A stretch of DNA of 64,000 nt from Macrostomum hystrix (lineage: Eukaryota; Animalia; Platyhelminthes), in contig CATNEN010000002.1 in NCBI GenBank assembly GCA_950097015.1, forward strand, positions 6,758,001-6,822,000. The letters are read 5' to 3'. The stretch's first letter is position 1. Every line of letters starts with the position of its first letter. Shown here in pieces: positions 5,321 through 32,367 of this stretch. Made by a program: the position numbers and the translations under genes. Under the pieces are notes generated by a model, which did not search any database, was not told the DNA's origin, and saw only the letters and a list, made by a program, of their open reading frames with translations.

Positions 5321-5836
5321 TCAGAACTCGCAGAACTGATGAAGGTAGCTCCGGCGACACCAATTGCAGCAGCAGTTGGACACGACGTCCTCAGTTCGGC
5401 GAACAGCGGAGCAGCGCCGGATTTGCTGGCTGCGATGCAACACGGCCTTCGAGCCGACTGAAAATGACCATTTTTTAATATTAATCTATTGGATCAAGCG
5501 AGTCGGTGGAATTGATTCCACAGAAAATGCATACTTTGAACAGAACGAGCCAGCTCAGGTGTTTCGGCATCGGAGTCGGCATCGGAGCCGTACAGCTCAG
5601 TCCCGCGCTCTCTGCAGACTGCAATCAAAGCGGCCTTCAAATCAGCGCCACAGGCTCGGATCCACTGGGCCTGAAATTGTTCGTTATCTATTTTTTGTTG
5701 CTGCTCAAAATAAATACTGACGGCTCAACTAGACTTAGTGATAGACAAATCTTACCGGGTTCTTTTTCTGACAGCTGACTTCAACGATCATGACACCAAA
5801 AACAAGCATAGCAACAAGCGATAGTGTCAGGCGCAT
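5321..5836 (-). CDS. Insulin-like peptide precursor, paralog 1 (3 exons: 5780-5836, 5535-5670, 5321-5457; 109 aa)
   Basis: Hand-spliced at GT-AG introns (phases 0 and 1): MRLTLSLVAMLVFGVMIVEA|QWIRACGADLKAALIAVCRERG...QIRRCSAVRRTEDVVSNCCCNWCRRSYLHQFCEF*. Signal peptide, B-chain CGxxLxxxLxxxC and A-chain CC-x3-C-x8-C signatures are present. Confidence 0.9.
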
Positions 5837-5925
5837 GATCAGCAAGGTGAGTTTTATTTCTAGAGAAAGTTGCAGCTCGCAGCCAGCTTGCTATGGAATC
5901 GACTGAGCAAGCGCCCTTGCTGCCA

Positions 5926-5968
5926 TATTTATAGGGAGTCGAGGCGATTGCAGACCGCATCTGATTGG
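5926..5968 (-). promoter_or_regulatory. Candidate TATA (TATAAATA, 5926-5933) and CCAAT (5964-5968) boxes of ILP paralog 1
   Basis: Minus-strand motifs about 90 and 130 bp upstream of the ATG at 5836; similar arrangements upstream of paralogs 2 and 3. Confidence 0.4.
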
Positions 5969-8113
5969 TGGCCCCATTCGCTGTCCGATCCCTATTTTTA
6001 GATACTATTTTTAGCAAGAACCTTTCCATTTTAGTTTGATGATTTTTATTATCATCATTGACAAAAAGGCGAAAAACAAATCAAAGCATGACGAAAAGTA
6101 CTGATGCTATGCCGAATGTATTCGAGTATCACCGGGCTGCGTCTTAGGTACGCGACGTTGCATCTCATTAAACCCCCGGGTTTCCACAGTGACCAAAAAC
6201 AAAATCCCGATTTAATCAGCTGGCAGCCTTCAATGGCACGAATGTTTTTATTGCTAAATCTTAGTTTTCTCGAAGCTTTAAGAGTAACTATGAAATCTGT
6301 AGTTTTGCAAACCAGAAATGCTCCTGCCTTGATTTTACTATATAACGAAACAGCCATTTGTTGATTGTCCATTAAACGACAAGCGTGCACTAGTTGATGT
6401 ATTTTTAACCGGCGAAATAAACACTTACAAGACTTGCCAAAAATAGGTCATGCAATTTCAAATAGTCTATGGCAAAAGTGGGGTTCGAATTGCCATAGAA
6501 TTCTCTAGCTCTATGTTAAGGTATCGAATTCTATGGCAGTATCACGCCGGCACTTTTTTCTTCCAACCTAAAAACCGGCTGTAAATAAACAAATTTAAAA
6601 TAAGTAGTTTTGGCCCGAGAAGCATGATCAAGCTCATCGGTCATTTGTTTTTTTACTAGCTCTCAATTCAGGCGCATAAAACTTTCCGGTGATGCACGAT
6701 TCAAATTTACATTTTTTCACTTTTTTCATATTTTTGGGTCTATTATTTGGTTTGGAATTTGGAATACAATAGAATGACAATGATTAATGAATGGATGAAT
6801 GGACAGCCACCACTCAAATTGCGCTGCGCTTCCAAAAGCCGTGTACAACGATTCCGTCCATGGACTGTGTAGACCAACTCCAAGAAGGAACTGCTCTTCA
6901 TGCTCTGAGCATGGATTAAATGAACGTTATTATGAATATTTTGCAGGCTGAAAGATTCAGTCATTTACTCCCAGAGATCGCTTACTCACAGTAGTGTCAA
7001 GAGTTTGACATATTTATTCTGCTCATTTGAATCGGAACAATTTATATTTATCATCAGTTCCGGAAAAGGACTTCAGATTGATAGCTTTTATTATCTGTGA
7101 CATGGTGACGTGCCAACTTGCAATCATAGTGCACATTCACCCGTTCTCAAAATCCTATTACTGACTGCATGAACAGGTTTTGTCTATCACTTGGTATTTA
7201 AAAATCGATCACTTGCTTTGCTTGGCAGTTCTAAAAGTAGAACCTATAATTACCAATTAGCAACAAAATAATGGGATCAATAAATAATTCCACGAATATC
7301 GTACTCTGCTCTCATTCATTCACCGAACGCCAGGACATTGTCCAGCTGCAGGATGATGCCAACAGATGCCAGATTTATCAGCGGTTGCAAAAAGCTGTTC
7401 CAGCAAGTCAGTAGATTTCATCGTGTTGACAGCGCCTTCTAGCAGCACCAGATCGCCTTTTACAGTCCAGATGACTTAGGCCACGTTGCAGCATGCGTGA
7501 CTGGACATGCCTGCTGCTTAACAGACCCACATGTTGGGCAGGACAGGTCAGGAGGTTTTAAAAACAATGCTGCGTGTGATTCACCCACCCCCTCTTTAGC
7601 GAAACGATGCAAAAGTTGTCAAAATAAAACACTACAGTTTCCTAAAAAATGCAAAGAATGCAAGCCCCCCCCGAGTAATGTCCAATCAGCAGGGAGATGC
7701 ATCTCAGAACATTCTTGGACTATCACTATTCTTTTGAATACTGTATTAGCTCATGCGCGAACTACGTGTGTACTACGTGTTACATAGTCGTGAATTTTTA
7801 GCTTTATTCGTCAGCTTCTTTCAAATGATTCAAATGCAGAGCATTCTCAGCGTGTCGAAGCATTTAGGAGCTAAGAAAGATATTTAAAGTTTTTTTGCAT
7901 GTCAATGCCGTCAGAGTTTCGTCAGTTAAATATATTTCTATCAAAGATGGCTTGAAGGATAAACACAGAAAGGTAGCAGAGCGTATTTAGGGGTGGGGCC
8001 TTGCTTTAACTAGTAACAAAATAAACGGTTCAATCCGAACACGGGAATATTTGAAGTTGAACTACCATTGTCTTCGCCCGATCCATACAGCTCAACTGGT
8101 GTGTCATCCGGTC

Positions 8114-9081
8114 TTAAACGGGGCCGGGTTTGGCGCAGTATGTGTGCAGGTAGGACACGCGGCACCACCTGCAGCAGCAGTTGTAAACAATGTCAACACT
8201 CTCGATGTAGCACCTCAGCTGGTTGATGGACTTGTTGCGCTTTGTCAGTAGTCTGGTCACTGGAAAATGGGAACATTTCTTAGAACTGAGGTTCCCAATT
8301 TACTGCAGTGCTCGACTATGGCTTTATTTTTTCTCCTTGTATAATTTTGATGTAAAAATCCTTAACTGTTACTTAAGTAGTTACATTCGAATTGATTATA
8401 ATTTACTATCTTTTTATGAGTCTCATCGACTGTTATGAGACAGTGTAAAGGGAAAGCTTTATGACGTTCAAGTGGCCATAGACGCCATGAGCTTTTGGCC
8501 GTAGACATCCATTCAATCAACGCATGTTCATGTGTGTCAATTTATCAACTCATGCTTGAGGTTTTTAAAAAATCTAAAAGCTACAACAAAATGTATTGTG
8601 CCTATGGTAAGGCCGGATGCAATTCCTATTGGCCTCTGCACACCAGGTGGCATCAGCTTGACTACCACAGCGTGGCGCTCTCACCGTAGCTAACTTCCGA
8701 ACTGCTGTCGAATACGCCACCCCTGTCGGCGCAGGCGGAGTGCAACTCTTCGACTAGTCGATGACCGCACTCATTCAGCCAGCGAGCCTGCAAGTTTGCA
8801 TGGACAAGCGGAGGATCAAACGAATTGCAAAATATAATTTGGGGTCATCAGTGGCTCTGAAAAGGCAAGCTTGATTTCGGAGTTATTCTAACCGATGTTA
8901 GCTAATGTTTTTGGTCCTTTAAGAACCTTTACTTCAAGTACTATTTAGCATGCTTCGATTAAAACTCAAATTCTGATCTCACCGGGTTGTTGTTTTGTGA
9001 GCAGTTGCTGTGCCAGCACAGGTTGGCGAGACACAGAACTAGAAGCAATGCGTGACTTCCGCGAAGGGTTAATCCGACCAT
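8114..9081 (-). CDS. Insulin-like peptide precursor, paralog 2 (3 exons: 8983-9081, 8685-8787, 8114-8259; 115 aa)
   Basis: MVGLTLRGSHALLLVLCLANLCWHSNCSQNNNP|ARWLNECGHRLVEELHSACADRGGVFDSSSEVSY|VTRLLTKRNKSINQLRCYIESVDIVYNCCCRWCRVSYLHTYCAKPGPV*. GT-AG introns with the same phases (0, 1) as paralog 1. Confidence 0.92.
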
Positions 9082-10223
9082 GGCGAGTCTTTTTCGAGTA
9101 GGCGGAGGGCGTCGAGCGACGAAGTTCTTGGGTCCCAACAGGATTTAGATGGCTAAATCGCTTGACTTTACTGAGTTAGAGAGATTATCTGATTGCTGCT
9201 CGGATTACTGCTCCAGTGTGAAACTCTCGGGCTTTTCAGTGTGAAAGGCTGCGCTCCTTTATTGTGGAAGTCGCCCTTCTCAGTCCCCGTCCCATTGGCT
9301 GCCAAATATGATGCGTAGGCAGCCAATCCTTTCTAATCCGGATGACTGAACCAGACTGCACGCTCTGTCATGGGCCGGCTGATGTTACTCAAATATCGAT
9401 GGTGATGCTGGAGCTGCATCGGATTATAAGTCGAAACAATTATAACACTAGCCTGTAAGCCATGGTACCTATGTCTTTTATGCTTCTACGAGAATACTCA
9501 TTGAAGACAGTAGGTGGTATATAGGCTCGTATGCGCTCTATAGAGCCTGCTATATATTAGAAAATATTTAAGTTGAAGTAGCCTAAAATATCGTGATATC
9601 GAGCTGTTCGAAACTAAGAAAAAACGTGTACGTCTTCCTTTTTCATGCTGTGTATTATATTTTTAGAAATTTTCTTTTCGGTCGCCAGTGTGTGGTTCAA
9701 TAAGTTTAGTATAGTAGACTAGCTGAAACAACCTCCGTAAATTAGTTCTTTAGCTTGATTCGGCATCTGTTGGCCGACTATAATCATAATTTGTAGCTTC
9801 ATGACTTCAAATGCTTCAAATGCATGAGACAAGTATTTGAGTTATTGCTTACTGTCAGAATTTACTTCTGATTGGTGCTTCATAAACGCGAATTTGAAAA
9901 AACGTTGGAAAGAAGGCTAAACGTTAGTTTTAACTACTTATGCTACGAAGCATAGATTTTCGTCGCAGAGCTGTTTGCGTCCATTTTTATTAAGACAAAA
10001 GGTTGATTAGCATGACAAAAAATCAGCACAAATGGCGCAATCTTGCATGCAAAATTGGGTTCAAGAGGTTCAAGAGGGCCAAAATACTCCGCCCTCTGTC
10101 TGCGCTTCTGCTTTTGGGACTAAAATGGCTTAAAAAATAATATTGTCCGAGAGAGTAGGAGACAAACAGTCGCATGGATGCTGGCTCTGGAATGTCCACT
10201 GGCTAGCAGCTGGTTGCTGATCT

Positions 10224-10757
10224 TCAAATTGGTCGTTCGTAGGCGCAGTACTGGTGCAGGTAGGACACCTTGCACCAGCGGCAGCAGCATTGGTTCACCA
10301 GATCGTCGTTCTGGTTAAGCATGCAGCGCAGGTCGATCATGCTGGTGGAGCTGCGCTTGCTGGCCGCCACACCTGCGGATGGTCCGGGTTCGAATTGGCA
10401 TGAACAGAACTAAATCTGAGTCAGATTTTTTTCTGGAAGGACAAAGAGCAACTCACGCGCCATCAGGGCCCTTGTGGAGGCCATTTGCCGTCGGCGGCTC
10501 ATGAACTGCCTCTGGCCGCTGGAGCTGTCGTAGACTCCGCCACGGTCGGAGCACGCGTTCACCAACTCCCGGACCAGGCCATCGCCGCATTCGTTCAAGA
10601 AGCGATCCTTCGAACAGCGTTGCATGGAAGGGAGAATAAGATTTGCTCTGATGGAAAGATATAAAAGCGAACGTCAGCAACTTACCGGATCGCCGCGAGC
10701 GAAACAGTAGCAAACGGTGCAGGCCACGATCAGTGCGATCAAGATAATTCTGCTCAT
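10224..10757 (-). CDS. Insulin-like peptide precursor, paralog 3 (3 exons: 10686-10757, 10457-10607, 10224-10372; 123 aa)
   Basis: MSRIILIALIVACTVCYCFARGDP|DRFLNECGDGLVRELVNACSDRGGVYDSSSGQRQFMSRRRQMASTRALMA|RVAASKRSSTSMIDLRCMLNQNDDLVNQCCCRWCKVSYLHQYCAYERPI*. Exon 2 is partly visible as ORF 10410-10625. Confidence 0.92.
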
Positions 10758-15999: not shown

Positions 16000-16467
16000 T
16001 GATTATTGATTATATAAAAATTCTAAAATATATCAAAACGCTTCAAAAATAATAAAACAAACACAGTAAATAAATAATAATCAAATCGCAGTACTATGCA
16101 CGTTTTTGAACTGGAGGACTGTTGTCAAAATATTGCCTTCGCTAAAAAACAAATGTCACGGAAATCCGGTAGGCTGTACTTAAAAATGGCATCTCACTTT
16201 GTTCTGCTGAATAAATAATAAGGCAAAATTCTTTAGCCATGAAAGTTAAAAAAATTAAAGCACACAAAATTGGAATGTATTAGGAAGACATGAACAGGCC
16301 TCCCTAGTTAAACAATGATGAAGTTCCGAAAAAAGTGATGATGTCGTTGTTAAATAATGTAAAAAGGATTTGAGACATGAAATAGAAAATATCAGGTATG
16401 ATGTAAGTGTGATGCAGGATAGGAATCATTAGAAGCGAGCAAATATCAGTACACGAGGAGAAAACCT

Positions 16468-16685
16468 GCCAAGAACGGTCTAGAACCCGCCAAGAACGGT
16501 CTAGAACCCGCCAAGAACGGTCTAGAACCCGTCAAGAACGGTCTAGAACCCGCCAAGAACGGTCTAGAACCCGCCAAGAACGGTCTAGAACCCGTCAAGA
16601 ACGGTCTAGAACCCGTCAAGAACGGTCTAGAACCCGCCAAGAACGGTCTAGAACCCGCCAAGAACGGTCTAGAATCCGTCAAGAA
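16468..16685. repeat. 21-bp minisatellite (AAGAACGGTCTAGAACCCGCC)n, about 10 copies, overlapping the ATPase stop codon
   Basis: Direct reading, period 21. Confidence 0.95.
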
Positions 16686-17037
16686 ATCGCGGCTTCAATC
16701 CGAGCCAGCCATCGGGCGTCATTCGCTGCAGCAGAAGTTTCCTCGCGGCCTCGTGAGCCAGGATGAACAGAGCAAACGGCATTGCTGGCAGCCACCAGGT
16801 GAACCGCAGAGGCTGCATCTGTGCGGCCTGGTTGAGTCCGGGACTGTACACAAGCAGAACAGCCAGACCAGTCTCCAGCAGCAGCGCTGCGGTCAGATGG
16901 CGATAGTTGGCGAGCTGCAGCCGGGAGCTGTCTGCTCGGGAGCCGCAGGCGAACAGGTTGGCCCACTGCAGCAGCACCAGGCTGCTGAAGAACACAGCGT
17001 GGGCGGTCTGTTGCAGCCGCGTGCGCTGCTGATGCGA
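16669..17037 (-). CDS. ATP1A-like: Na+/K+-ATPase alpha-like gene, last visible exon (8 of 8; M8-M10)
   Basis: Acceptor cccgcag at 17038; SHQQRTRLQQTAHAVFFSSLVLLQWANLF...LETGLAVLLVYSPG...PLRFTWWLPAMPFALFILAHEAARK...LDGF* aligns with TYEQRK..TCHTAFF.SIVVVQWADL... Confidence 0.88.
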   Translation of the reverse strand, partial: SHQQRTRLQQTAHAVFFSSLVLLQWANLFACGSRADSSRLQLANYRHLTAALLLETGLAVLLVYSPGLNQAAQMQPLRFTWWLPAMPFALFILAHEAARKLLLQRMTPDGWLGLKPRFLDGF

Positions 17038-18681
17038 CTGCGGGGGCGGCAGGCGGGTTCCGGGGCAGTGACAGGACGCGAGGAGACGAGTTTCACTTTG
17101 TCAGCATCATAGGGTGCGGATTAAGCTATGGGATGAGAAGGTTAGACGACTGGACAAAAAGTGCACTGGAAAAGTCATGGATTTTAGAAGGCTTACAGAA
17201 TGACGTCCGTTCGTGGCTTAAAGGTTGTGATTGACTATTTGACAGCTGACAGGCTCAGGCTCAGCTGACTGAATGATATCAAATGCTGATAGACAGACAG
17301 ACGAACAGGCAGAGACAGAAAGAGAGACAGACAATGGCAAAGAATGCAGAATGAAGGAAAAAATACAATAAAAAGCAGCACGCACGCATACAAAGCTGAT
17401 AGACAAACGGAATAATTGCAGTTATTGGCTCTGTCGGCACTTAGAAGCACTTAAAACAGGCTCGTTGGAAACTGCCTGGAAGCAGTTAGAAGCACCTCTT
17501 GTGAAATCGCGACTTTGTGTGTCGGCATTATCCCAATATCCTCGGGGAAGAGACAAACTCTTTGGCAAAGGATAGACACTCCCAGGCAGAAACAATAAGA
17601 GTTTGGCATCGTAAATACTCGTAGCATTGTAAAGAAGCAGCTAAACCGAAGCACGGTGAGTCAACAAAATTCAATAGACTAAAACCAGTGACTATTTTTC
17701 CTAGTGCAGATGCACTTCAAACATTCAACAACGGCAAAGATTTGCCAGCAGAAAAAGCCTGTTTTGGCTCGAAAGCAACTCGGCGACTCGCATAAATTAA
17801 AAGCTCGGATGTGTTCAAGATTCGATTTGCATAGGCCGCTGAGTCATGTGACTCAAGAGCCGCCTCAAGAGCTGCGCAGTTTCAGGGGAAGGTTACTTTG
17901 AGCACTACCGGATGAGCACATGCTGAGCACATGTCGGGGTCGCAAACACCGACCACGCGTCAACTTGAGTTGTTGTGGTTTTTTTATAAACCCGCACGAT
18001 AATAAGATGAGGCTTTCTAAGAAGTGACGCGCTGCGATTTCTAAGAAACTACAAGGAAGCCAAAAAGCTGTAAAAGGACTGCTATATCGTCCTTAAGAAA
18101 AACAGCTGACATTTCTTTCAAGAATTTTCAGTGACATTTTTTTTCAAATTCAAACGCATTTAAAAACCAAACTAAAACCAGCTGGCTTATACATAAGGAG
18201 TGCCTTAAAACAAATAAAACGTTTTCTAAGAATTCTAGAGAGCCAAAAATTCTCGAAGCTGTTTGTTATTCCATAAGAATTTAAACTGTTCTACAAACAA
18301 AGAAAAACATACATTTTCAGAATCACAAGTCAGGCCATTTAAATTAGTGAAGGTTTTAAGCAGTAAGAGAAAGTTTCTATGAAACAGAGGCTTACTTGCC
18401 ATGAAAATCCAGACGAAGAGTAAAATGTCTAGCTAAAGGACACAAATTGTTCTGGTAAAATTAGGTCTCGCATCGAATCGACATTCAAGTCGTGAGAAAA
18501 CTTACTCCCCATTGTTTTCTATTTAAATTAATCTTCTTTAGAATAAAGGTTCTTGTTTTTCTTGTTTTTTAGAATAGCACTAGCAAATTTTGCCCCCCTT
18601 CGGGGAGCAGAAATATTTTAAATTTGTCTAGTACTCGTACATACTTCTTAGCAGCTGTATTTTCAGCTTTTTTAAAGATAC

Positions 18682-19150
18682 AATGATCCCCCAGTTGACA
18701 ATGTTCCCCAGTTGAAAATGATCACCCGGTTGACAATGATCCCCCAGTTGACCATGATCCCCCAGTTGACAATGATCCCCCAGTTGACAATGATCCCCCA
18801 GTTGAAAATGATCACCCAGTTGACCATGATCACCCAGTTGACAATGCTCCCCCAGTTGACAATGATCCCCCAGTTGAAAATGATCACCCAGTTGACCATG
18901 ATCACCCAGTTGACAATGATCCCCCAGTTGACAATGATCCCCCAGTTGACAATGATCCCCCAGTTGACAATGATCCCCCAGTTGACAATGATCCCCCATT
19001 TGATTATGAATCCTCATTGATGATGATCACCCAGTTGACAATGATCCCCCAGTTGACCATGATCCCCCATTTGATGATGATCCCCCCAGTTGACCATGAT
19101 CCCCCGTTTGATGATGACTCCCCATTGATGATGATCCCCAGTTGACAATG
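18682..19150. repeat. 18-bp minisatellite (ATGATCCCCCAGTTGACA)n
   Basis: Direct reading. Confidence 0.95.
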
Positions 19151-19295
19151 TTCCTCAGAAGAAGATAATATACGTATTTTTATATTAGCTGCTTTTGTAA
19201 AAAACAGAGAAAAACAACATTAAATGAATAGTAGACAAAAAATATTATCATACAAATATATATATATATATATAGATAGAAGAAGAATATATATA

Positions 19296-19478
19296 GAAGA
19301 CTGACCTCTATCATGATCCTCATATGGGAAGACTGACCTCTATCATGATCCTCATATGGGAAGACTGACCTCTATCATGATCCTAATATGGGAAGACTGG
19401 CCTCTATCATGATTCCCATGTAGGAAGACTGGCCTCTATCATGATCCCCATATGGGAAGTCTGACCTCTATCATGATC
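19296..19478. repeat. 32-bp minisatellite (GAAGACTGACCTCTATCATGATCCTCATATGG)n, about 5.5 copies
   Basis: Period 32 (19296, 19328, ...). Confidence 0.9.
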
Positions 19479-19677
19479 AGGATCCTCAGGTGTGGAGACT
19501 GAGTAAAGTTAATCGTCGGAGAAATCTTCAAAAAGCTACTCACCTGTGAATCCAGATGGTGCAGATGCTGCTGCTGCTGCTGAGGTGATCATTATGACGT
19601 TATAAGATAAAAAAACTTAAATGCAGAGAATTCGATTCAATGACAAAAGAAAAATGTTGCCATGATTCACACCCACC

Positions 19678-20112
19678 CTGGTTTAGCCATGATTCAAGCT
19701 CTGGTTTAGCCATGATTCAAACTCTGGTTTAGCCATGATTCAGACTCTGGTTTAGCCATGATTCAAACTCTGGTTTAGCCATGATTCAAACTCTGGTTTA
19801 GCCATGATTCAAACTCTGGTTTAGCCATGATTCAGACGCTGGTTTAGCCATGATTCAAACTCTGGTTTAGCCATGATTCAAACTCTGGTTTAGCCATGAT
19901 TCAAACTCTGGTTTAGCCATGATTCAGACGCTGGTTTAGCCATGATTCAGACGCTGGTTTAGCCATGATTCAGACGCTGGTTTAGCCATGATTCAAACTC
20001 TGGTTTAGCCATGATTCAAACTCTGGTTTAGCCATGATTCAGACGCTGGTTTAGCCATGATTCAGACGCTGGTTTAGCCATGATTCAAACTCTGGTTTAG
20101 CCATGATTCAGA
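19678..20112. repeat. 23-bp minisatellite (CTGGTTTAGCCATGATTCAAACT)n, about 19 copies
   Basis: Direct reading; two unit variants (AACT/GACG). Confidence 0.95.
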
Positions 20113-20864
20113 CACTTGTTTTGCCATGCAAAAGTGAATTAAAAGTTTCCCCTTTATTTTCAAAACTAAATAAAAATTTTGCTTTGCATCCATCACTACT
20201 GACTGACAATTAATTTAAATATTTGACGCAGTGAAGAGTCGAACCAGGGACACTTCGCCTAGCCTAGCCTAACCTATTCCTAGTGCCTACACATCGGCTA
20301 CTCCGACTGTTGGATTGTGGATGCAAAAATTAGCCTTATAAAATGAATTCTCAAAGTTCTGGCTTTGTATAAATAGAGTACACTTAGGTGGTGTACATTA
20401 ATTTCAAATTTGTGTCCAGATTGTGCAGGCTTCTAATTCAGTCAGCTAGGGGGTGTTGCGCAAGTTGACGATGCAATTCCAATTCAGTGGCCGTCAGTGA
20501 AATTCTCAATAGGCCAAGATCTTTTGACCTTTGAAAAAATAAGCAAAAAGCATGTTTTTGGAACCTTTATCCCATTTAGAATAAAGCAATTTCTTAGCAA
20601 AAAGTTGCGTACCGTTGCTGGAAAATGTGGCGTCTTTTGGCGAAAGAATGGCGAAAATCGGTTCAGCCGTTTTTTCTCGTGGAAAAGTGACCCACAAGCA
20701 AGTACGAGTCGTAGTATAATAATACATTCTGAGACATCCCGTCTGTACACCAAGAGCCCCATTGGGGAAAAATTACACAAGCAACTTACGTTTGATACAA
20801 CTCAGCTTAATGCTACTAAGGTACATGGATATACTATCCCCTCAGCAGTAAAAAACCAGTGTCT

Positions 20865-21442
20865 CCCCAGCAGCAGAGAACTAATTCCCCCCCCCAGCAG
20901 CAGAGAACTAATTCCCCCAGCAGCAGAGAACTAATTCCCCCCCAGCAGCAGAGAACTAATCCCCCCCTGCAGCAAAAAACTAATTTCCCCCCCAGCTGCA
21001 GAGAACTAATTCCCCCCCCTCCAGCAGAAAACTAATTTCCCCCCCCCAGCTGCAGAGAACTAATTTCCCCCCCAGCTGCAGAGAACTAATTCCCCCACCC
21101 CAGCAGCAGAGAACTAATTCCCCCCCAGCAGCAGAGAACTAATTCCCACAGCAGCAGAGAACTAATTCCCCCAGCAGCAGAGAACTAATTCCCACAGCAG
21201 CAGAGAACTAATTCCCCCAGCAGCAGAGAACTAATTCCCCCAGCAGCAGAGAACTAATTCCCCCAGCAGCAGAGAACTAATTCCCCCAGCAGCAGAGAAC
21301 TAATTCCCCCAGCAGCAGAGAACTAATTCCCCCAGCAGCAGAGAACTAATTCCCCCAGCAGCAGAGAACTAATTCCCCCAGCAGCAGAGAACTAATTCCC
21401 CCAGCAGCAGAGAACTAATTCCCCCAGCAGCAGAGAACTAAT
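20865..21442. repeat. About 23-bp minisatellite (AATTCCCCCAGCAGCAGAGAACT)n with variable C-run
   Basis: Direct reading. Confidence 0.95.
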
Positions 21443-21644
21443 GTTCTCCAAACAGAAGAGAGCCTCCATAATACCAGAATGGAGGCTACTTGCAGGCTAC
21501 CAAACTCGCAGCAAGAAATGTTGCCCTTTTTCTTTGACAGGAAACCATTGCCCCCAAATAGCAAAGTAACGATGTGTCAATCGTTGTACTCAGCCCAGAA
21601 GGCAACAAATATCTCCTGTTACATGTGGCACGGTAGATACATTT

Positions 21645-21775
21645 AGAAAACTGTTAAACGCATTTAGAAAACTGCGGGACACATTTAGAAAATCGTTGGA
21701 CACATTTAGAAAATCGTTGGACACATTTAGAAAATCGTTGGACACATTTAGAAAATCGTTGAGCACTTTAGAAAA
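21645..21775. repeat. 21-bp minisatellite (ACATTTAGAAAATCGTTGGAC)n
   Basis: Direct reading. Confidence 0.85.
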
Positions 21776-22798
21776 CGGTTTTGATCAGTCTTCGTCGAAT
21801 AAAGTTTTATAATTATTACTATAAAATAAGTTATTTTTTTAATCGAATAACGCTTAAAGCAATGCTTAAAAAATAGAAAAATTGGAAATAATTTACGCTC
21901 TCAGCTGCGCTCAATATTTTTTTCTTGCAGTTCTGAATCTGATAACGCTTGCAGCTATGCACAAAAAATATTTCCCAAGTTTTAGTATCGAATAAAACTT
22001 GCTGCTTTACTCGAAAAGAAAAGCTAATACTATTTTCTGAAAGCGAGTACAGGAATAATAAAGCTAACAAATATCTGCTTCGACAGTAGCTGACCAAAAG
22101 CGCTTACTATTTATACTCGAACCCAAAAATGCCCAAAAAATACTAATAAACAGGAACTTACGTTTTTAACTGCTGATGTTTAGAAGATTAAAAGAAAAAG
22201 AAGCAGTAACACAGCTGATGCTGAAATTCTACCTGCATTCTACAAAAGCATAAAAGTACTTTACTTCGGAGCTCGATGAAAAAAAAGCGGCACAATGATC
22301 GAAGTCGAGACAAGGTTTGACAATAGAAAGGCTGCAGTTTTATGGATAGAAAGGAGGAGGAGAGGTCTCGCTAGCATTGAGCATCATAAAAGCCCAATCA
22401 TGAAATCTGCTATGTACGTTTTGCGTATTCAAATCAAATCACTCGATCAGCCAAGAGACAAATTTATAAACGTACGTACGGGTCGAAAAGCAGTGACGCA
22501 ATCCTATTCAATTGAGAGTATCGGGCCCTGTTCTGTGCTATATACCAATGCACGCGCGGGCGAGAAAAAGCACCGATGCAATCTAATAAAACTGACAGTG
22601 TCCGGCCCTATTCTAATTTAACCTTGTTTGGCCTCCTATTGAAAGCAATAGGAAAACTCGTTTTTCGAATATTTAATACCCTTGGCATTGAGACAGAATG
22701 ATGAAATTTGATCAGTCTAATCCTTGGATGAATTGGCACTTTTTGGTGAAAACAGGAAAAAATTGGTCTAGCCATTCAATCGCTAGAGCATTTCAGAT

Positions 22799-23100
<302 letters not shown>

Positions 23101-23220
23101 ATGACTTTAACAAAATCCAAATATTTGTTAAATCTTTTGATGAAGCAAAAAGTTATTCGTTTTCTAAGAAACGAATAAACCTATTTTTTCTAGCAAATCG
23201 TTTAGAAATGTTGTCCTCAC

Positions 23221-23832
23221 CCACTCCTGTCCGTAGCTGTCCTCGATGTCCATCAGCGCCACGCTATCCCATTCTTTTCGAAGTCCGAGCAGCCGCAGGG
23301 GCCAGAAGCCGTTCTCGGCCATCACAACGAAGTAAGCGAACATCGCGCCGACGATTTGCACAACGCCAACCTGGGCGAAGGCGGCCGCGAAGACGCCCTC
23401 GTTGATTAATCTTCGGCTTCGTCTCGGATCGCAAAGAGCACTCTTTGACGACCTTTCAGCGGCTTCGGCGGCTTCGCCGAAGAGCAGCAGAGTGACAGAG
23501 GGCAGCAGGTTGGTGCCGAGGTCGATGCAGAGCAGGGTGGCGGCACCCATGGGCAGCGGCAGGCCGCAGGCTAGGTACAGCACGAACGCCGCAGCTTCCG
23601 GTAGATTAGACGTCAACGCAAAAGCAATGGCATGTCGGAGATTGTCAAAGGCGGCGCGGCCCTCCTCGATGCTGGCCACAATGACGCCGAAGCTTGCGTC
23701 GGAGAGGACGGCGTGCGACGACTGGCGGGCCGCGTCGCTGCCCAAAGAGCCGCCGAAAGCGAGGCCGATGTCGGCGCGACGAAGCGCCGGACAGTCGGCT
23801 ACATCGCCGCCCGTAGTCGCTACAACGTGGCC
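23221..23832 (-). CDS. ATP1A-like: Na+/K+-ATPase alpha-like gene, exon 7 (P-domain end, M5-M7)
   Basis: cag|GHVVATTGGDVADCPALRRADIG...DNLRHAIAFALTSNLPE...CIDLGTNLLPS...YGQEW|gtgagg; 612 nt, phase 0/0. Confidence 0.93.
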
Positions 23833-23839
23833 CTGAATG

Positions 23840-25110
23840 AGCGGATGGAGGAGCGGATGGCGGAGCTGATGGTGTAGCAGATGGAGGAGTGGATGGAGGA
23901 GCGGATGGAGAAGCGAATGGAGGAGCGGATGGAGGAGCGGATGGAGGAGCGGATGGAGGAGCGGATGGTGTAGCAGATGGAGGAGTGGATGGAGGAGCGG
24001 ATGGAGGAGCGAATGGAGGAGCGGATGTAGGAGCGGATGGAGGAGTGGATGTAGGAGCGAATGGAGGAGCGGATGGAGGAGTGGATGTAGGAGCGAATGG
24101 AGGAGCGGATGGAGGAGTGGATGTAGGAGCGAATGGAGGAGCGGATGGAGTAGCGGATGGAGGAGTGGATGGAGGAGCGGATGGAGGAGCGAATGGAGGA
24201 GCGGATGTAGGAGCGGATGGAGGAGTGGATGTAGGAGCGAATGGAGGAGCGGATGGAGGAGTGGATGTAGGAGCGAATGGAGGAGCGGATGGAGGAGTGG
24301 ATGTAGGAGCGAATGGAGGAGCGGATGGAGTAGCGGATGGAGGAGTGGATGGAGGAGCGGATGGAGGAGCGGATGGAGGAGCGGATGGAGGAGTGGATGG
24401 TGTAGCGGATGGAGGAGTGGATGGAGGAGCGGATGGAGGAGCGGATGGAGGAGTGGATGGAGGAGCGGATGGCGGAGCTGATGGTGTAGCGGATGGTGTA
24501 GCGGATGGAGGAGCGGATGGAGGAGCGGATGGCGGAGCTGATGGTGTAGCGGATGGAGGAGTGGATGGAGGAGCGGATGGAGGAGCGTATGGAGGAGCGG
24601 ATGGAGGAGTGGATGGAGGAGCGGATGGAGGAGCGTATGGAGGAGCGGATGGAGGAGTGGATGGAGGAGCGGATGGAGTAGCGGATGGAGGAGTGGATGG
24701 AGGAGCGGATGGAGGAGCGGATGGAGGAGCGGATGGAGGAGTGGATGGTGTAGCGGATGGAGGAGTGGATGGAGGAGCGGATGGAGGAGCGGATGGAGGA
24801 GTGGATGGAGGAGCGGATGGCGGAGCTGATGGTGTAGCGGATGGTGTAGCGGATGGAGGAGCGGATGGAGGAGCGGATGGCGGAGCTGATGGTGTAGCGG
24901 ATGGAGGAGTGGATGGAGGAGCGGATGGAGGAGCGTATGGAGGAGCGGATGGAGGAGTGGATGGAGGAGCGGATGGAGGAGCGTATGGAGGAGCGGATGG
25001 AGGAGCGGATGGAGGAGCGGATGGAGGAGCGTATGGAGGAGCGGATGGAGGAGTGGATGGAGGAGCGTATGGAGGAGCGGATGGAGGAGTGGATGTAGGA
25101 GCGGATGGAG
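23840..25110. repeat. 12-bp minisatellite (GGAGGAGCGGAT)n, about 105 copies, intronic
   Basis: Direct reading; source of the HPLL/PPSA/GGAD repeat ORFs. Confidence 0.97.
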
Positions 25111-25639
25111 GATAAAAAGTCGAACAATGTCTGTATTCTCGTAGATTGAGAAAAACTTCTTGAGTGACAACGGGGACGGACAAAAGAGGCAGACTGATGA
25201 AACAGAGCAGTCCCATACTTGTACTACAGAACGATTTGACAAGTTTGTGAGCATTGTAAAATGTCGCTTTTGAGAAGTCTTTGCAATTGAACAGGTGGCA
25301 GCCGGGTCAACAAGTTTCCGAGGATGAACAGGAAGACTGGAAGAAGGTAAGGAAAGACAAACAATTCCCGAGAATAAATTCTAATCACATATTGTTCTGT
25401 GCAAGTGCAAAGTCTGGATGAGGCAATTGGGGGGAGGCGCCGATGCACAGGTAAAGCGAGCAAAACGCACTGGCGTCGGTGAGGGGGAGCTGCAGACAGA
25501 GACAAAAAGTACTCACAAAGAACGAGTTGCCTGTTGACTGTTCCAGTTTGGGAAAATTCAGAAGCATTTTATTTACAGTGTTTTCCAGGTATTACCAACA
25601 GTAGCTAGATAAGAATTTATCAAGAAAAGTTGATATTAT

Positions 25640-26150
25640 TAGATAATGGGATCATTGGTTCAGATGATGGGATCATTGCTTCAGATGATGGGATCATTGC
25701 TTCAGATGATGGGATCATTGCTTCAGATGATGGGATAATAGATGATGGGATAATAGATGATGGGATAATAGATGATGGGATAATAGATGATGGGATAATA
25801 GATGATGGGATAATAGATGATGGGATAATAGATGATGGGATAATAGATGATGGGATAATAGATGATGGGATAATAGATGATGGGATAATAGATGATGGGA
25901 TAATAGATGATGGGATAATAGATGATGGGATAATAGATGATGGGATAATAGATGATGGGATAATAGATGATGGGATAATAGATGATGGGATAATTATTGA
26001 TGGGATAATTCATTCAGATGATGGGATCATTGCTTCAGACGATGAGATCATTGCTTCAATGATGGGATAATTCATTCAGATGATGGGATCATTGCTTCAG
26101 ACGATGAGATCATTGCTTCAATGATGGGATAATTCATTCAGATGATGGGA
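25640..26150. repeat. 15-bp (GATGATGGGATAATA)n core flanked by 21-bp (TCAGATGATGGGATCATTGCT)n units
   Basis: Direct reading. Confidence 0.95.
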
Positions 26151-26172
26151 TCACCATACCAAAGCCGCTCAC

Positions 26173-26460
26173 CAGCCGCTTGCAGCTCTCCACAATGCGC
26201 AGCTTCTGCTGCGGGCTAATCCTCGCAAAGACCAACTGCTGCCCGGTGCTGAGGACATTGTCCAGCTCTTCAGCGGACAGAACCGCCAGTTGATCCCCGG
26301 TGACAACTCGAGCATCCGCATCCAGCGGGTTGATCCGGTCGAGTGGAACTCCGCGCTCCGCTGCCAGATCTTCCGGGGTCTTGCTGCGGCTGCCGATGAT
26401 GCCAGAGTACCGGGCCACCGCGCGAGCAGTGGCTGGATGGTCGCCTGTCAGCATCAGCAC
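26173..26460 (-). CDS. ATP1A-like: Na+/K+-ATPase alpha-like gene, exon 6 (P domain)
   Basis: cag|VLMLTGDHPATARAVA...VFARISPQQKLRIVESCKRL|gtgagc; 288 nt. Confidence 0.93.
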
Positions 26461-26484
26461 CTGTGGGAGCCGAGGAGAAATGAG

Positions 26485-26697
26485 GATCACCTGAGGTTCA
26501 CGGGAGTCACTTGGCGTTCATGGGAGTCACCTGAGGCTCATGGGAGTCACCTGAGGCTGTGGGGAGTCACCTGAGGCTCATGGGAGTCACCTGAGGCTTT
26601 GGTGAGTCACCTGAGGCTGTGGGGAGTCACCTGAGGCTCATGGGAGTCACCTGAGGCTTTAGTGAGTCACCTGAGGCTGTGGGCAGTCACCTGAGGC
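26485..26697. repeat. 20-bp minisatellite (TGGGAGTCACCTGAGGCTCA)n, intronic
   Basis: Direct reading, period 20. Confidence 0.92.
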
Positions 26698-26712
26698 GCA
26701 AAATCTACCCAC

Positions 26713-27072
26713 CTTGATACCCAGACGTCGGCACCAGGTCACCGCATCCAGCACCTCCGGTCTCAGTGGGTCAGTCAAGGAGACGAGGCCGAGGAGCCGC
26801 AGGCCGCATTCCAGTGGAAAGTTCACTTGGTCGGCATCGAACTCATATCCGGGCGGGAACTCCTGCTGGCTGAGGCGCAGGTCGCAGAAGGCCAGGACTC
26901 GCTCGCCTGTGGAGCCCAGCTCAGCGCATGCATCGGCAACCGCTGCCCGCCAATGTTCGTTGATTGGGAGGCTGCGGCCGCCGCACAAGACGGTGGAGCA
27001 GCGGCGAATGACGGCTTCGGGTGCGCCCTTCAGCACCAGCAGGTGGCCGGAGCCGTCAGCGTGAACCGACGC
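26713..27072 (-). CDS. ATP1A-like: Na+/K+-ATPase alpha-like gene, exon 5 (N domain)
   Basis: cgcag|ASVHADGSGHLLVLKGAPEAVIRRCS...GERVLAFC...TDPLRPEVLDAVTWCRRLGIK|gtgggt; 360 nt. Confidence 0.93.
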
Positions 27073-27276
27073 CTGCGATTCGTGTGTGTTGGAGTCTGGT
27101 GTGCAGAGTGAGTGTAACTAGAGGAGACAGCGGGAGAGGAGACAAGGGGAGAGGAGACAGGGGAGAGGAGATAGGGGGAGAGGAGACAGGGGAGAGGAGA
27201 TTATAAAAAATCGAAGCGGATTATAAGAGAAATCTCATCGCCTTCTTGTCGCAGGTCAGACCCAGCCGGTCCTCAC

Positions 27277-27680
27277 CTGGAAGCGGGTCTCGCAGCTGAA
27301 CGGCAGCTCGCAGAGTTTCGGGTGCCGCCTTCGAAGGGCTTCAAGCTCGGCCGCGCCGCCCGGAGCCGTCCACTGGGCAAACTGCAGCAGCGCCAGCTCG
27401 GTGGAGTCGCCGACGACGCCGACGTTGGCATTATTCGAACTCAATGACGGATCTGCCAGTGGCTCCTTGGAGCTGTCATCGACGTCAATCCTGCTGTTGA
27501 AGCCGACCTCCGCCCGGCTGCACAGCGCGATGCAGCGAGCCAACCGGAGCCAATCAGGCCCGGACAGCAGCGAGCTGCGCGCATCCGGAAGCGCCGCCGA
27601 CCAATCGGACGCGCCGGTGTCCCAGAGCCGGCCAGAGTGCCAGGTGTGCGACACCGACATGCGGCCCGTGGTGAGCACCC
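27277..27680 (-). CDS. ATP1A-like: Na+/K+-ATPase alpha-like gene, exon 4 (N domain)
   Basis: ggcag|(G)VLTTGRMSVSH...GDSTELALLQF...ELPFSCETRFQ|gtgagg; 404 nt, phase 1/0. Confidence 0.9.
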
Positions 27681-27707
27681 CTGCCATGGGAGAGCGTGGG
27701 GGTTGTG

Positions 27708-27800
27708 CATTGGAGGTTGGCCCTCAAGCCCCAAATGAATGTAGCCTCGCCGCGCGGAATCGAGCTCTAGGACCTTGGTTCGAGAGGCTAACGCGTTAGA
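27708..27800 (-). mobile_element. Internally deleted copy of the SINE at 15708-15999
   Basis: Shares ggaggttggccctcaag and ccccaaat.aatgt.gcctcgccgcg..gaatcgagctc with the 15.9-kb copy; the body between these blocks is missing. Confidence 0.6.
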
Positions 27801-27991
27801 CGTAATACCGCTTTACTGAGTATATACTATACTGCGACTCACCCCCCAAAACGCTCGTAATCGTACATTGGTGCTGATTTTTGACTCTGGGAGCCAATCG
27901 GAGAGGGCGTCAAAAAACAGCATGGTCACGTGATTCTGCCCCGCCTACCGGATGATGATTGGCAGGCCATGGAGTGGGGTGGGTGTTCCGC

Positions 27992-28017
27992 AGGGTTAGG
28001 GTTAGGGTTTGGGTTAG
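27992..28017 (+). repeat. Short interstitial telomere-type repeat (TTAGGG-like x about 4)
   Basis: AGGGTTAGGGTTAGGGTTTGGGTTAG. Confidence 0.6.
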
Positions 28018-28038
28018 AGCACTCCCAGGCCCTCTCAC

Positions 28039-28437
28039 CAGTCTTGCCGGTACAGACGACGCTGCACCGCCCAAGAGCTTCCACAGCGGCCAGGCTGCGC
28101 ACATGGCAGTGCCTTCTGGACAGTCGCCGAGCTGACAGCGCCAGGCAGGCAGCGGCTGTCACGGTCAGGCCCTCCGGCAGGAAGGCCAGCGCAGAGCCCA
28201 GCATGAGAACCAGAGCCTCCAGCCAGTTGTACTGCGTCGCGAATGCAACGATGAAGAAGGCAAGGCCGACTGCTCCAGCTAGGAAGCTGCTGAGCTGGAC
28301 GAAATGACCGACTTCGCGAATTATCGGCGTCAGCTCGAAGGACGCGTTGCCGGGGTCGCCGTTGGCAGCTGCTAGGTTGGCCACTTGACCCATCAGGGTG
28401 AGACCGCCGGTGCGAATTACCAAGGCTGTACAGCTAC
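28039..28437 (-). CDS. ATP1A-like: Na+/K+-ATPase alpha-like gene, exon 3 (M3-M4, phosphorylation motif)
   Basis: cag|(G)SCTALVIRTGGLTLMGQVA...AFLPEGLTV...VRSLAAVEALGRCSVVCTGKT(G)|gtgaga; 399 nt, phase 1/1. Confidence 0.93.
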
Positions 28438-28465
28438 CTGTCACAGTGAGTGCATGTTGAAGCCT

Positions 28466-28620
28466 TCACAATGACCCCACTGCGTTCACAATGACCCCCA
28501 CTGCGTTCACAATGACCCCACTGCGTCCACAATGACCCCACTGCGTTCACTATGACCCCACTGCGTTCACAATGACTCCACTGTGTTCAAAATGATCCCA
28601 CAGCTGTCCTAATGACACAA
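28466..28620. repeat. 20-21-bp minisatellite (CACAATGACCCCACTGCGTT)n
   Basis: Direct reading. Confidence 0.85.
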
Positions 28621-28879
28621 TTGCTGATCCCACAACATTTGAATGACCCAACAGTCGTTACTATGCTCCCACTGCCGTTATGAACCAACAGTCTTCCTGC
28701 TGACGCAACTGCCTTGCCACTGAGTTTGTAATCACCCAACGCCCCTCTGATGACCTCACGGTCTTCTCAGGGATCCAACTACCATATCCTGATGATCTCA
28801 CTGCCAACCCACTGCCCTGCTAAATGACCAAAATGCCTTGGAAATGCCTCCACTATCGTATCGCACATCCCAGCCTCAC

Positions 28880-29147
28880 CTTCAACAGCGAATGTGGTAA
28901 AGAAGGCCAGGTTTTCCGTTTCCAGCGGGTTCTCGCTGGTGTACATCGGCGAACGCGGCGAAGGCTCCGATGGACCAGTCAGCACGGAATTGTCCACCCG
29001 GAATCGTTGAGCAGTCAATATTCGGACATCCGCTGGCACTTGGTCACCGCTGGAGATCTCAACTAGGTCTCCGTACACGAGCTCCTTGACTGGGATCCGA
29101 AGCCTTCGACCACCTCGTGTGACCAGCGCCGTCTGGGGCAGCGCCTC
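28880..29147 (-). CDS. ATP1A-like: Na+/K+-ATPase alpha-like gene, exon 2 (A domain)
   Basis: cgcag|EALPQTALVTRGG...GDLVEISSGDQVPADVRI...VDNSVLTGPSEP..RSP..TSENPLETENLAFFTTFAVE(G)|gtgagg; 268 nt. Confidence 0.93.
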
Positions 29148-29239
29148 CTGCGATGGTTGTGATATCCGACCAGTCACAATGTACTTTTAGAGTGGAAGTT
29201 GGTGTAGAGGTCACACCCACATCTACTCTGGCTGATTCT

Positions 29240-29388
29240 GGTCTCAAACTCACAGCTGGAAGCAAGCTGGAGGAAATTTTCTTGCCCAAGGGCAAAAATC
29301 GTTTTCCCTTAGGCTGAGATTCGAACTAGCGACCCCCCGGATCACTGTAATGCTCCACACGCTCCGTTGTAAACGGTTGAACTACCAA
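29240..29388 (-). mobile_element. tRNA-derived SINE with CORE-like central motif, intronic
   Basis: Minus strand: GGTAGTTCAACCG... B-box AGTTCGAATCTC, followed by GCCCTTGGGCAAG, resembling the CCTTGGGCAAG motif of CORE/V-type SINEs. Confidence 0.45.
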
Positions 29389-29985
29389 AGGGAGGACAAT
29401 TTTTGTGCTGCACCCGAACGGAGCAACGCAAGCACACGAAACTCAAGAACATGGGCCAACTTTTTGTTGCGCATCTTCTGAAACAAGAATCAAGTCGCCA
29501 GCTCTTCAGATCGTCGTGATATTCAATGGTTCTGGCCGAAGGTCTGACTTTTCCCATAAGGTTATTTGATATACCCCAATACACGAATTAGCACTGCGCC
29601 TCAGTGCGGCCTTGCCAGGCCTTCAAAATTTATCAGCATGTCACCCGAATGTGCCTGCATCATCTCCGTCTTCGGTGGTCACCTACCTTTATCTAGACGG
29701 ACTGCTGGACCTTCAAAGGCTACAACAGTTAGAAATAGGCCACTATGGACACCCTGACGCGAATTTCTCCTATTTCACTTATCAAGCCTAAATATTAGGC
29801 GCAGCTCAACCACAGGATACCATCGCCTAGTCTGTCAACCAATCAGTCACCACCCAACGCTGTTTGCATTCGGGCGCTGTCAAAATAATTTTCAGGGGAC
29901 GGGGATTTCGCCCCTTGGTGGCAAAATGGCTTGGTAGTCCTATATATGAATGCTCAATTAGTAAGATAAAAGCTCTGAAGCGCAC

Positions 29986-30435
29986 CTTGAACATGTCGGC
30001 CAGTTTGTCTGCTCGAATCTCCAAGTAGCACGACAAGCCGGCGTTTGCACCGACAACTACTAGCAGTAGAAGGCCCATGGCGAGGTTGTCCATCATCGGC
30101 TGCTCGTCGGCTGCCACCGATTCGGCGCGCACAGCGTAGGCGACGAGGCTGAGCAGGCCCGCTGCCAGCAGCAGCAGGGAGACACCGCTGAGAGCCGAGC
30201 GGGCCAGACGGACCCAGACGGGCACGGCTAGTGGCGGCTGCAGCTGGTTCGGATCGTCGGCCAGCAGCCGCTCGGCTGCCTGGTCATCCGTGAGGCCGTC
30301 GGTGAGGCTGGTGTCCAGGTGCTGCGCCAGCAGGCGAGGATCGATTCGGTGTTCTACGATGGCAAACTCCTGACGAAGTCGATGCTCGACTCCTGACGAG
30401 GTCGGCTGGTGGTTCGCGGCCGCCGCGTGGCCATC
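29986..30435 (-). CDS. ATP1A-like: Na+/K+-ATPase alpha-like gene, first visible exon (N-terminus, M1-M2); 5' boundary uncertain
   Basis: LRQEFAIVEHRI...GLTDDQAAERLLADDPNQLQPP...WVRLARSALSG..LLLLAAGLLS..AY...DNLAMG...ADKLADMFK|gtgcgc. No in-frame ATG; 30435 follows a candidate acceptor ccctccag. Confidence 0.85.
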
Positions 30436-32367
30436 CTGGAGGGCCGCTCGGAAACTGCCTTGTCTATGGCTCTGAGGGATTTTTGAGTCTCTTTGATTTT
30501 GGATTTTAACAAAACACACAAACTCTTTTACTAAAATTTGTGTGATTTTCTGCTCTTTTCTAACTTATATCGAGGCTGGGGCTTCCGAATTATCTAGGTC
30601 CATGGAGACAAATAAAGAAAATAACTAGGATTTAATTATATTTTAAATAATATCAGTATATTAAATGTTTTATTAAATAGCAGTATTTGTTGCTAGCATT
30701 GTAAAATTGTTTAAGCTGAAAAGGTACTTCAAAATTATTTTTAAAAAGCTCAATTTTTTTTCGATTTTTTGAAGTCTAAGTTAACTACTACTACTGATAT
30801 TGTGAAAACTGCTCCAACTAATCAAATAAGCGGAAAGGATACTACAAGAACAATCTTGCATGCTGTTCAATAGTTTCATTATTTCATTATTTCATGTATA
30901 TAGCTAATACAATCCATTTTTTAAATAATTCAGAAAAAAATCTCGAGAAAAAATGTTATATATATATATATATATTATTTTACTTTTGATCAGCTCTAAC
31001 CCTTGTGGCACTTAGACAGTGCTTAGCTAAGTCTAGGTCATTGACTGAACAGCTCTTGACAAGTGCACCCTGGTATCGAGCTACAACCTTCTTAAGCTTT
31101 TTTAATCAAGTCAGTATATTTAAACTGTTGTCTACTAAAATAAACTTATTTTGTGTCCATTGACTTTTAAACTTAATTGCTTCTATACATAAAAAGAAAT
31201 AAAATAATTTAGCTATTTATCTTTGCACAACTATGTAATGTAGCTATACCAAAAAGTCCATCTTTACATATAAACATGGTACTTTTAAGGCACATTGCAT
31301 AGTTATGTGAAAAAGTAATGTGAGAAAATGTGTAAAAGTGAGCTAATTCCATAAGAAAAGTTTACTTCTATTAGTTCTACATATATATTTATTTACTAAA
31401 AACTTTTCGTATCACTTGAATACGAATACGAATCACTTGATCTTAGTTTTGATACTTTTTTAATTACAACTGTGTACTTCGTTTACTGTGTGAGCATAAT
31501 TGCAATAAATTACTAGGTCGATTATTTTTTGCTTTCTGCTGTACAAAATCCAGAGGCGATTTCTTTAAAAATGATTCGTACTTATCGAACTTAAATATTG
31601 AAGCAACGCGGTAAGCCGTTTAAAACAAATGAAAGTAATATTCTTCTAATGTATTTTAATAATTATTAAATTATTTTTAACAATAATAATTGTTACAGTC
31701 ATAAAGTATTTTACACAGAACTGAAAAGCTTATTGTTCGCTTTGTTGTATCATTGTTCTATTTATCAGCAATGCGTTATAATGTTTACCCATACTGAACC
31801 AATAACTTTTGTTAAACATTAGTGCTCTGTTTTTAAATTATATAGCTGCTCCGGTTCAAACTAAAAACCTATTAAATATTTATGTGTACAGAATCGCACT
31901 GCGTATGCTTGTATATACTGATAGAAAAATCAAGCTGGGAAATGCAAACACACTCTATAGAGAAGGCTGTCAAGTTTTGAGCAGTGGAAAACTGAGCAAC
32001 AGCTTATTGAGGCTGGAGCGTGCCTGAGCAAACTATAATTTATTTCCTCTCTCACTATTATGCCTACCTGCCGGAAATGAATTACTATCGATCGACAGCG
32101 CGACACGACAATATCTCGCTCTGCACTGTGGTAGATTCTGTGTACTGTGATTCTGTTTGCTAAAGATTGTGTTTTCATTCGAACCTTCAGTTAGAATTAT
32201 TAGTAAGACACGATTCAGAGTCACTACGCATCGACTACGAGCGATATAATAAAAGCAACAGAAAGACAGCGTGCAAATTACAGCTGTGATAGCACTCATG
32301 CAAGATGATTGACCTCAGTGCGAGGCACGCCAGATCTTTGATCAATTCGCGAGGTAGCGTAAAAATT

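Follow-up and report, generated by a model that had tools for sequence, protein, structure and literature searches.

The Na,K-ATPase has roles in junctions, in polarity and in signalling that are independent of pumping, but since one protein does both, they are not easily told apart from transport. Among P-type ATPases, C. elegans CATP-1 is an alpha subunit of the P2C subfamily with a pump-independent role, and the alveolate guanylate cyclases fused to a P4-ATPase-like module keep the P-type fold for a role other than transport. Flatworm epithelia use septate junctions. The septate junctions of Drosophila require ATPalpha and Nervana2, but not the catalytic activity (according to a passage of PMC8006247 that cites Paul et al., 2007), and by analogy this would be the best precedent for the non-pumping role considered below. 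However, Drosophila ATPalpha and CATP-1 keep all of their catalytic residues and also pump, and the alveolate cyclases belong to another subfamily (P4), are fusion proteins and are found in protists. Here we describe a gene of the flatworm Macrostomum hystrix in which such residues have been lost in nature. It lies in a window of 64,000 nucleotides (the whole stretch analysed; GenBank assembly GCA_950097015.1, contig CATNEN010000002.1, positions 6,758,001 to 6,822,000), and it codes on the minus strand for a P2C alpha-like protein of full length. It is a real, expressed gene, trans-spliced to a spliced leader, and we consider it probable that its product has been kept for a non-pumping role, catalysis having been lost first and fast evolution under relaxed but continuing purifying selection having followed. 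No description of a naturally dead P2C alpha was found in the literature searched, nor does one figure in a 2023 review of the questions still open for P-type ATPases.

Gene model and catalytic motifs

The gene has eight coding exons, from 30471 to 16669, the bounds of which were taken from tblastn blocks and then refined at the splice sites. Searched with canonical pumps, the locus gives eight collinear minus-strand blocks that span the reference from residue 8 to its end. The coding sequence (CDS) of 3189 nucleotides, or 1062 amino acids, is an uninterrupted frame with a single terminal TAG and not one internal stop or frameshift; the remaining five frames contain 13 to 35 stops each. All seven introns are GT-AG. 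An initial annotation of the window had described eight GT-AG exons free of stops and frameshifts, which stands, and had begun exon 1 at 30435, which does not, the acceptor being at 30471/30472. The features are listed here in order of transcription, with the evidence for each in brackets (X2 is a cDNA-like sequencing run described in the next section).

30472..30474, minus strand: trans-splice acceptor CAG, the joining site of the Macrostomum spliced leader (X2 cDNA contig and published M. lignano leader)
29986..30471, minus strand: coding exon 1, amino acids 2-163, with the N-terminus and transmembrane segments (TM) 1 and 2 (cDNA and DNA contigs; Pfam Cation_ATPase_N, E 9e-12)
28880..29147, minus strand: coding exon 2, A-domain, with TGPS replacing TGES, Pro codon at 28971-28973 (contigs, PDB alignment, Pfam E1-E2_ATPase)
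28039..28437, minus strand: coding exon 3, TM3, TM4 with PEGL kept, and CTGKTG, Gly codon at 28046-28048 (contigs, PDB alignment)
27277..27680, minus strand: coding exon 4, with VLT of the P-site, and with GDSTE and ELPF in the first half of the N-domain, the most divergent exon (tblastn, contigs, Pfam)
26713..27072, minus strand: coding exon 5, KGAPE, GERVL and DPLR (contigs, motif alignment)
26173..26460, minus strand: coding exon 6, TGDHP and SPQQK (contigs, motif alignment)
23221..23832, minus strand: coding exon 7, TGGDVAD (23794-23814), TM5 with TSNLPE kept, TM6 with IDLGTN (Asn codon 23509-23511), a degenerate loop between TM6 and TM7 (L6/7), TM7, and SYGQEW at 23221-23238 (PDB match; first 10 codons from the loose end of the cDNA)
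16669..17037, minus strand: coding exon 8, TM8 with QWAN (Asn codon 16957-16959), TM9, TM10, the C-terminal RFLDGF replacing ETYY, and the TAG at 16669-16671 (exon 7/8 junction predicted from GT-AG, phase and the length of the cDNA contig)

With the canonical Na,K- and H,K-ATPase alphas (PDB 3b8e, 2zxe, 7e1z) the protein shares domain order, length and the ten TM segments, the hydropathy of which is in every case within the canonical range. Over exons 1-5, 7 and 8 the Pfam models Cation_ATPase_N, E1-E2_ATPase, Cation_ATPase (N-domain) and Cation_ATPase_C were all matched; the pieces from exons 5 and 7, taken singly, score just under the curated cut-off, and the short exon 6 piece gave no match to the Hydrolase model. 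When searched against PDB, exon 7 retrieved Na,K-ATPase alpha with an E-value of 1e-57, versus 1e-19 for SERCA, and the other exons tested agree. Identity to the canonical pumps is 41-45%, versus a median of 77% among those pumps themselves (75 full-length sequences), and 200 of the 507 columns that are conserved at 97% or more in them are altered here.

The alterations include the residues on which the reaction cycle depends. Opposite ICSDKTGTLT of the solved Na,K-ATPase the phospho-acceptor motif reads VVCTGKTGVLT, with Gly in place of Asp; the A-domain has LTGPSEP opposite LTGESEP, the Glu of dephosphorylation being replaced by Pro; and at the Mg2+ site of the P-domain TTGGDVAD stands opposite VTGDGVND, the Asp and Asn of GDGVND being lost and the final Asp of the motif kept. 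Also gone are the Thr after Gly in the P-site motif, the second Pro of DPPR, the L6/7 loop and the C-terminal YY. The nucleotide-pocket side is different, with GDxxE, PF, KGAPE, GERVL, TGDHP and ARxSPQQK all kept. The alignment to the solved chains bears out the three degenerate motifs as first read (CTGKTGVLT, TGPS, TGGDVAD) and the pocket motifs that the initial annotation had listed as retained (ELPF, KGAPE, GERVL, TGDHP, SPQQK); its coordinates were near but inexact, by about 10 nucleotides for the Pro codon and by one for the Gly codon, and TGGDVAD had likewise to be moved to the position listed above. No P-type ATPase works without the Asp of DKTGT (PMC10654040). With this phospho-acceptor gone there should be no aspartyl phosphate, hence no E1P/E2P cycle and no primary transport, and the protein, judged by its motifs, should be incapable of running the Post-Albers cycle. 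It has lost essential catalytic residues within an otherwise complete fold.

The cation sites are affected in part. The Glu of PEGL, the Ser, Asn and Glu of TSNxPE in TM5, the first Asp of TM6 and the Gln of TM8 are kept; two of the cation-site Asp are now Asn, namely the second one of TM6 (D808N), changed only in this gene, and that of site III in TM8 (D926N), a change common to this gene and its sister in M. lignano (see below). The Tyr-Thr pair of TM5 is Phe-Ala. The initial annotation had not remarked on the lost cation-site carboxylates, nor on the loss of L6/7 and of the C-terminal YY. The motif DSYGQEW is kept in the TM7-TM8 loop, putatively still able to bind a beta subunit. The TM ligands that remain (Glu of PEGL, Ser, Asn and Glu of TM5, first Asp of TM6) might be taken to speak for residual transport or hydrolysis by some non-canonical chemistry, or for a leak or channel by which cations would pass passively through the degraded site III and the C-terminal pathway; in canonical pumps, disease mutants altered at site III and the C-terminus do show leak currents. 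However, the leak modes known so far belong to phosphorylated states resembling E2P, which would be out of reach for this protein, the second Asp of TM6 and the entry loop L6/7 are lost, and the dependence of P-type ATPases on the DKTGT Asp counts against any activity of this kind. We regard it as quite improbable.

Transcripts and the source of the start codon

Contigs of a DNA run (X1) and of three cDNA-like runs (X2 and X4 from a 2020 study, X6 from the 2023 genome study) were placed on positions 26100-32000. The last three are not recorded as RNA, and their origin was judged from spliced contigs with the leader: contigs that lack the GT-AG introns and start with a spliced leader can only derive from mRNA. 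One X2 contig of 3234 nucleotides carries exons 6, 5, 4, 3, 2 and 1 in turn, at contiguous record coordinates and with zero mismatches, and in the cDNA-like contigs the first five introns are skipped exactly. Past 26172 the loose end of the contigs in X2 and X6 spells G-H-V-V-A-T-T-G-G-D, as encoded by the opening ten codons of exon 7. Beyond these codons, exon 7, exon 8 and their junction are consistent by length only, 1004 nucleotides of the X2 contig lying beyond exon 6 versus the 981 predicted plus a 3' untranslated region of ca. 23-24.

No exon letter differs between the assembly and the X1 contigs within the range compared, nor does any across the exon stretches covered by the spliced contigs of X2, X4 and X6; the variants among contigs are confined to a repeat in intron 1. 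The Gly codon (GGC) and the Pro codon, for which confirmation in reads and cDNA had been suggested, are thus present in both DNA and cDNA-like contigs, and the T-G-G-D in X2 and X6. The agreement between contigs from two studies upholds the earlier view that these are not sequencing errors. X1 may be the very sample behind the assembly; the spliced contigs come from the earlier study (X2, X4) as well as from the genome study (X6). An artefact of assembly or sequencing, or a mutation private to the strain in an otherwise normal pump gene, would moreover have to explain why some 200 of the 507 near-invariant family positions differ and not three, and we give it practically no weight. RNA editing that restores the Asp was also considered and rejected: no editing turns GGC into GAC, and the cDNA is identical to the DNA. 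The gene is present in eight runs, from two studies only. By word share, each of four runs of the 2020 study holds 0.47-0.48 of the sampled words, the exonic share of the query being 0.49. A run from a second organism (X9) has 7% of the words in common.

No ATG lies in frame in exon 1 ahead of TM2. The X2 contig extends 23 nucleotides past 30472, with letters that occur nowhere in the window, and these 23, taken with the G at 30472, are identical to the 3' end of the spliced leader published for M. lignano, the last three letters of which are ATG (PMC5173321). As this ATG is in frame with the pump open reading frame (ORF), the initiator codon is donated by the leader, and it is the only possible start codon of the 1062-amino-acid ORF. 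In M. cliftonense and M. hystrix this leader is reported to be strongly conserved, with a terminal ATG that likely serves as a start codon (PMC10468722); the gene described here is a clear case of a spliced leader supplying the sole start codon. Since this codon is not in the genome at the locus, gene finders that work from the genome only will miss the start. An upstream cis exon carrying the ATG was considered and rejected, the 24 nucleotides on the cDNA that are absent from the window being the spliced leader. Upstream of the acceptor (1.5 kb, within the range on which the runs were placed) no RNA contig was found over 30631-32000.

The locus is thus not silent. The claim that it is not a disrupted or silent pseudogene is supported by a transcript that is spliced and trans-spliced to the leader, by the open frame and by the canonical splice sites.

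Closest relative, rate and selection

The nearest sequence is BOX15_Mlig017217g1 of M. lignano (P0004 in our set), which is 51% identical and has catalytically intact motifs. The same protein is encoded identically at two M. lignano loci (L001 10001-18071, L002 10001-17243), and its own closest kin is the canonical alpha of M. lignano (66%). Mlig017217 keeps DKTGT, TGES, DLGTD of TM6 and the L6/7 loop and reads TGDGVSD at the Mg site, whereas the M. hystrix gene has lost all of these. The two are sisters in the maximum likelihood (ML) tree with 99% support by the Shimodaira-Hasegawa-like approximate likelihood ratio test (SH-aLRT), long-branch attraction being a risk in this grouping, and they have 47 derived residues in common, including those of QWAN and of the FL(D/E)xF C-terminus that replaces ETYY. 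Mlig017217 has eight coding exons too, and five of the seven introns are at the same codon and in the same phase. For introns 1 and 6 the positions differ by 12 and 37 codons (amino acids 163 and 736 here, 140 and 731 in Mlig017217), which points to intron loss and gain, or to sliding, within a small gene lineage. The two genes appear to form a divergent alpha lineage specific to Macrostomum, in which the M. hystrix gene is either the ortholog of Mlig017217 or an older paralog. Mlig017217 itself, a divergent alpha with intact motifs, TGDGVSD, Asn at site III of TM8 and no C-terminal YY, may be a pump with an altered Na+ site III or stoichiometry.

The two sisters have evolved at very different rates, a feature that the initial annotation did not mention. 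At the 685 columns with at least 80% consensus among canonical pumps, there are 183 lineage-specific changes in the M. hystrix gene versus 23 in Mlig017217, with 47 common to both and 81 changed differently in each, and of the positions at which Mlig017217 matches the canonical consensus 34% are changed in its sister. All in all, the M. hystrix lineage is 5 to 8 times faster. The amino acids Gly, Ala, Arg and Pro (GARP) make up 0.33 of the protein here versus 0.27 and 0.24 (0.24 in canonical pumps), a shift to GC-rich codons. Among the domains, L6/7 is accelerated the most and the TM7-TM8 loop, which binds beta, the least.

Such figures invite the alternative that the gene is dying: a divergent alpha, either duplicated or redundant, would have lost its function recently and would still be transcribed and open by luck, with no role maintained. 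The rate at conserved positions, the spread of the losses over catalytic core, ion sites, L6/7 loop and C-terminus, the GC-driven shift in composition and the failure of the database searches to find an ortholog with the same dead motifs would all be in keeping with it. However, in substitution-only neutral simulations only 1.5-2% of frames were still open at 10% amino acid divergence, and none of 200 at 20%; that is, 10% of neutral divergence closes 98% of frames by stops alone, indels uncounted, and the divergence of the lineage is ca. 27-34% at conserved columns. Neutral drift is possible for at most ~2% of sites. The lineage-specific replacements are strongly conservative, with a mean BLOSUM62 score of +0.16 versus -0.69 (standard deviation 0.11, maximum -0.33) in a stop-free, mutation-only null (z ~7.7). 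All the splice sites are canonical, with the first five introns seen to be removed, and the TM hydropathy is kept. In the pairwise comparison with Mlig017217 the non-synonymous divergence (dN) is 0.43 and the synonymous divergence (dS), which is saturated, at least 1.0, giving a dN/dS of at most ~0.4. The open frame, the conservative replacements, the hydropathy and the pairwise dN/dS together argue that purifying selection, relaxed but real, has probably acted through most of the divergence. The idea that the intact frame is no accident is also sustained, as divergence of this size could not have built up neutrally without stops. Decay seems disfavoured by the statistics of frame and replacements, and we think it unlikely, although it is the alternative that we take most seriously.

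We return to a gene retained for a non-pumping role, against which several of our own results weigh. Tajima's relative-rate test gives 255 versus 45 unique changes (p ~1e-33), and the end branches of the ML tree are 5.98 for the M. hystrix gene and 0.19 for its sister. The acceleration touches every domain, with 0.12 to 0.57 of the conserved columns changed (chi-square p = 0.03), and the low rate of the beta-binding loop, 3 of 26, falls short of significance when taken by itself. The change toward GC-rich composition also fits a gene sliding out of use. The depth of the contigs gives no expression level, and ATP binding, pairing with a beta subunit and localisation are predictions. Finally, the search for orthologs that had been proposed at the outset found none with the dead motifs, whether through exon 7 in its long ORF, exon 4 against 1.84 billion representatives, Mlig017217, or exon 7 alone, and nothing closer than 52%; the gene was not found among the M. 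lignano proteins in the database searched, and none of the other full-length relatives retrieved was without the catalytic motifs, save for a partial Paragonimus model that lacks that segment. Because no ortholog with the dead motifs turned up in these searches, selection on the dead state itself is something that we can only infer.

Possible roles, neighbouring genes and repeats

The favoured course of events would start from the Macrostomum-specific divergent alpha lineage, of which the M. lignano member is still catalytically intact. In the M. hystrix branch catalysis would have been lost, with rapid evolution under relaxed but continuing purifying selection thereafter. The protein would still fold as a ten-helix alpha and pair with a beta subunit. 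Binding of nucleotide, and perhaps of one cation, may have been retained, and the protein could serve a structural or regulatory role independent of pumping, for example as a partner in a junction or adhesion complex or as a decoy that tunes the assembly of active pumps. ATP binding and a role as scaffold or sensor, as originally proposed, stay hypothetical. A more specific form of this, in which a dedicated non-pumping alpha has retained the beta loop, the nucleotide pocket and part of the cation site in order to act as a junctional scaffold or as a switch sensing ATP or cations, is put forward tentatively, as a possibility that we hold to be somewhat less likely than its opposite.

A naturally dead and yet expressed alpha-like protein would split the two functions that are otherwise combined in one protein. 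Were the dedicated non-pumping alpha true, it would amount to a natural separation-of-function allele and a clean genetic handle on the disputed pump-independent functions, and with a catalytically intact close relative in a sister species capable of transgenesis it would make a comparative system. The pair could be used to learn the functions of the fold in the absence of the cycle, the surfaces that remain under constraint, and the pace at which a P-type ATPase changes after catalysis has gone. The interest would be higher if orthologs show the dead state to be conserved.

The neighbourhood of the gene has also been preserved in part. At both M. lignano loci there are insulin-family genes a few kb downstream of the ATPase gene, and the insulin-like cluster of the window (5321-10757) has ca. 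37-39% protein identity to that at L001 22381-28071. Between M. lignano and the window the insulin-like neighbour differs in its orientation with respect to the ATPase gene; the presence of insulin-like genes beside the divergent alpha at both loci is a conserved microsynteny with one inversion.

The gene is rich in repeats, with minisatellites of 15-32 bp period in nearly all of its introns. Intron 6 contains at 23839-25112 a 1.3-kb tandem array of ca. 106 copies of a 12-bp unit, which keeps the frame open and joins exon 7 in a single ORF of 696 amino acids, a trap for gene calling based on ORFs. A 21-bp minisatellite of 10.6 copies (16463-16685) begins within the final codons of the CDS and has a TAG in frame in each unit; the C-terminal codons with their TAG resemble a first unit that has since diverged, and expansion of the array would seem to have started at the 3' end of the gene. 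Lastly, intron 1 contains at 29250-29985 a very high-copy repeat, with a word depth that reaches ~390,000 in the DNA contigs versus ~99 in the flanks. It is present in the cDNA-like runs too, and a 75-79% identical copy is found downstream of the M. lignano homolog (L001 19348-19524).

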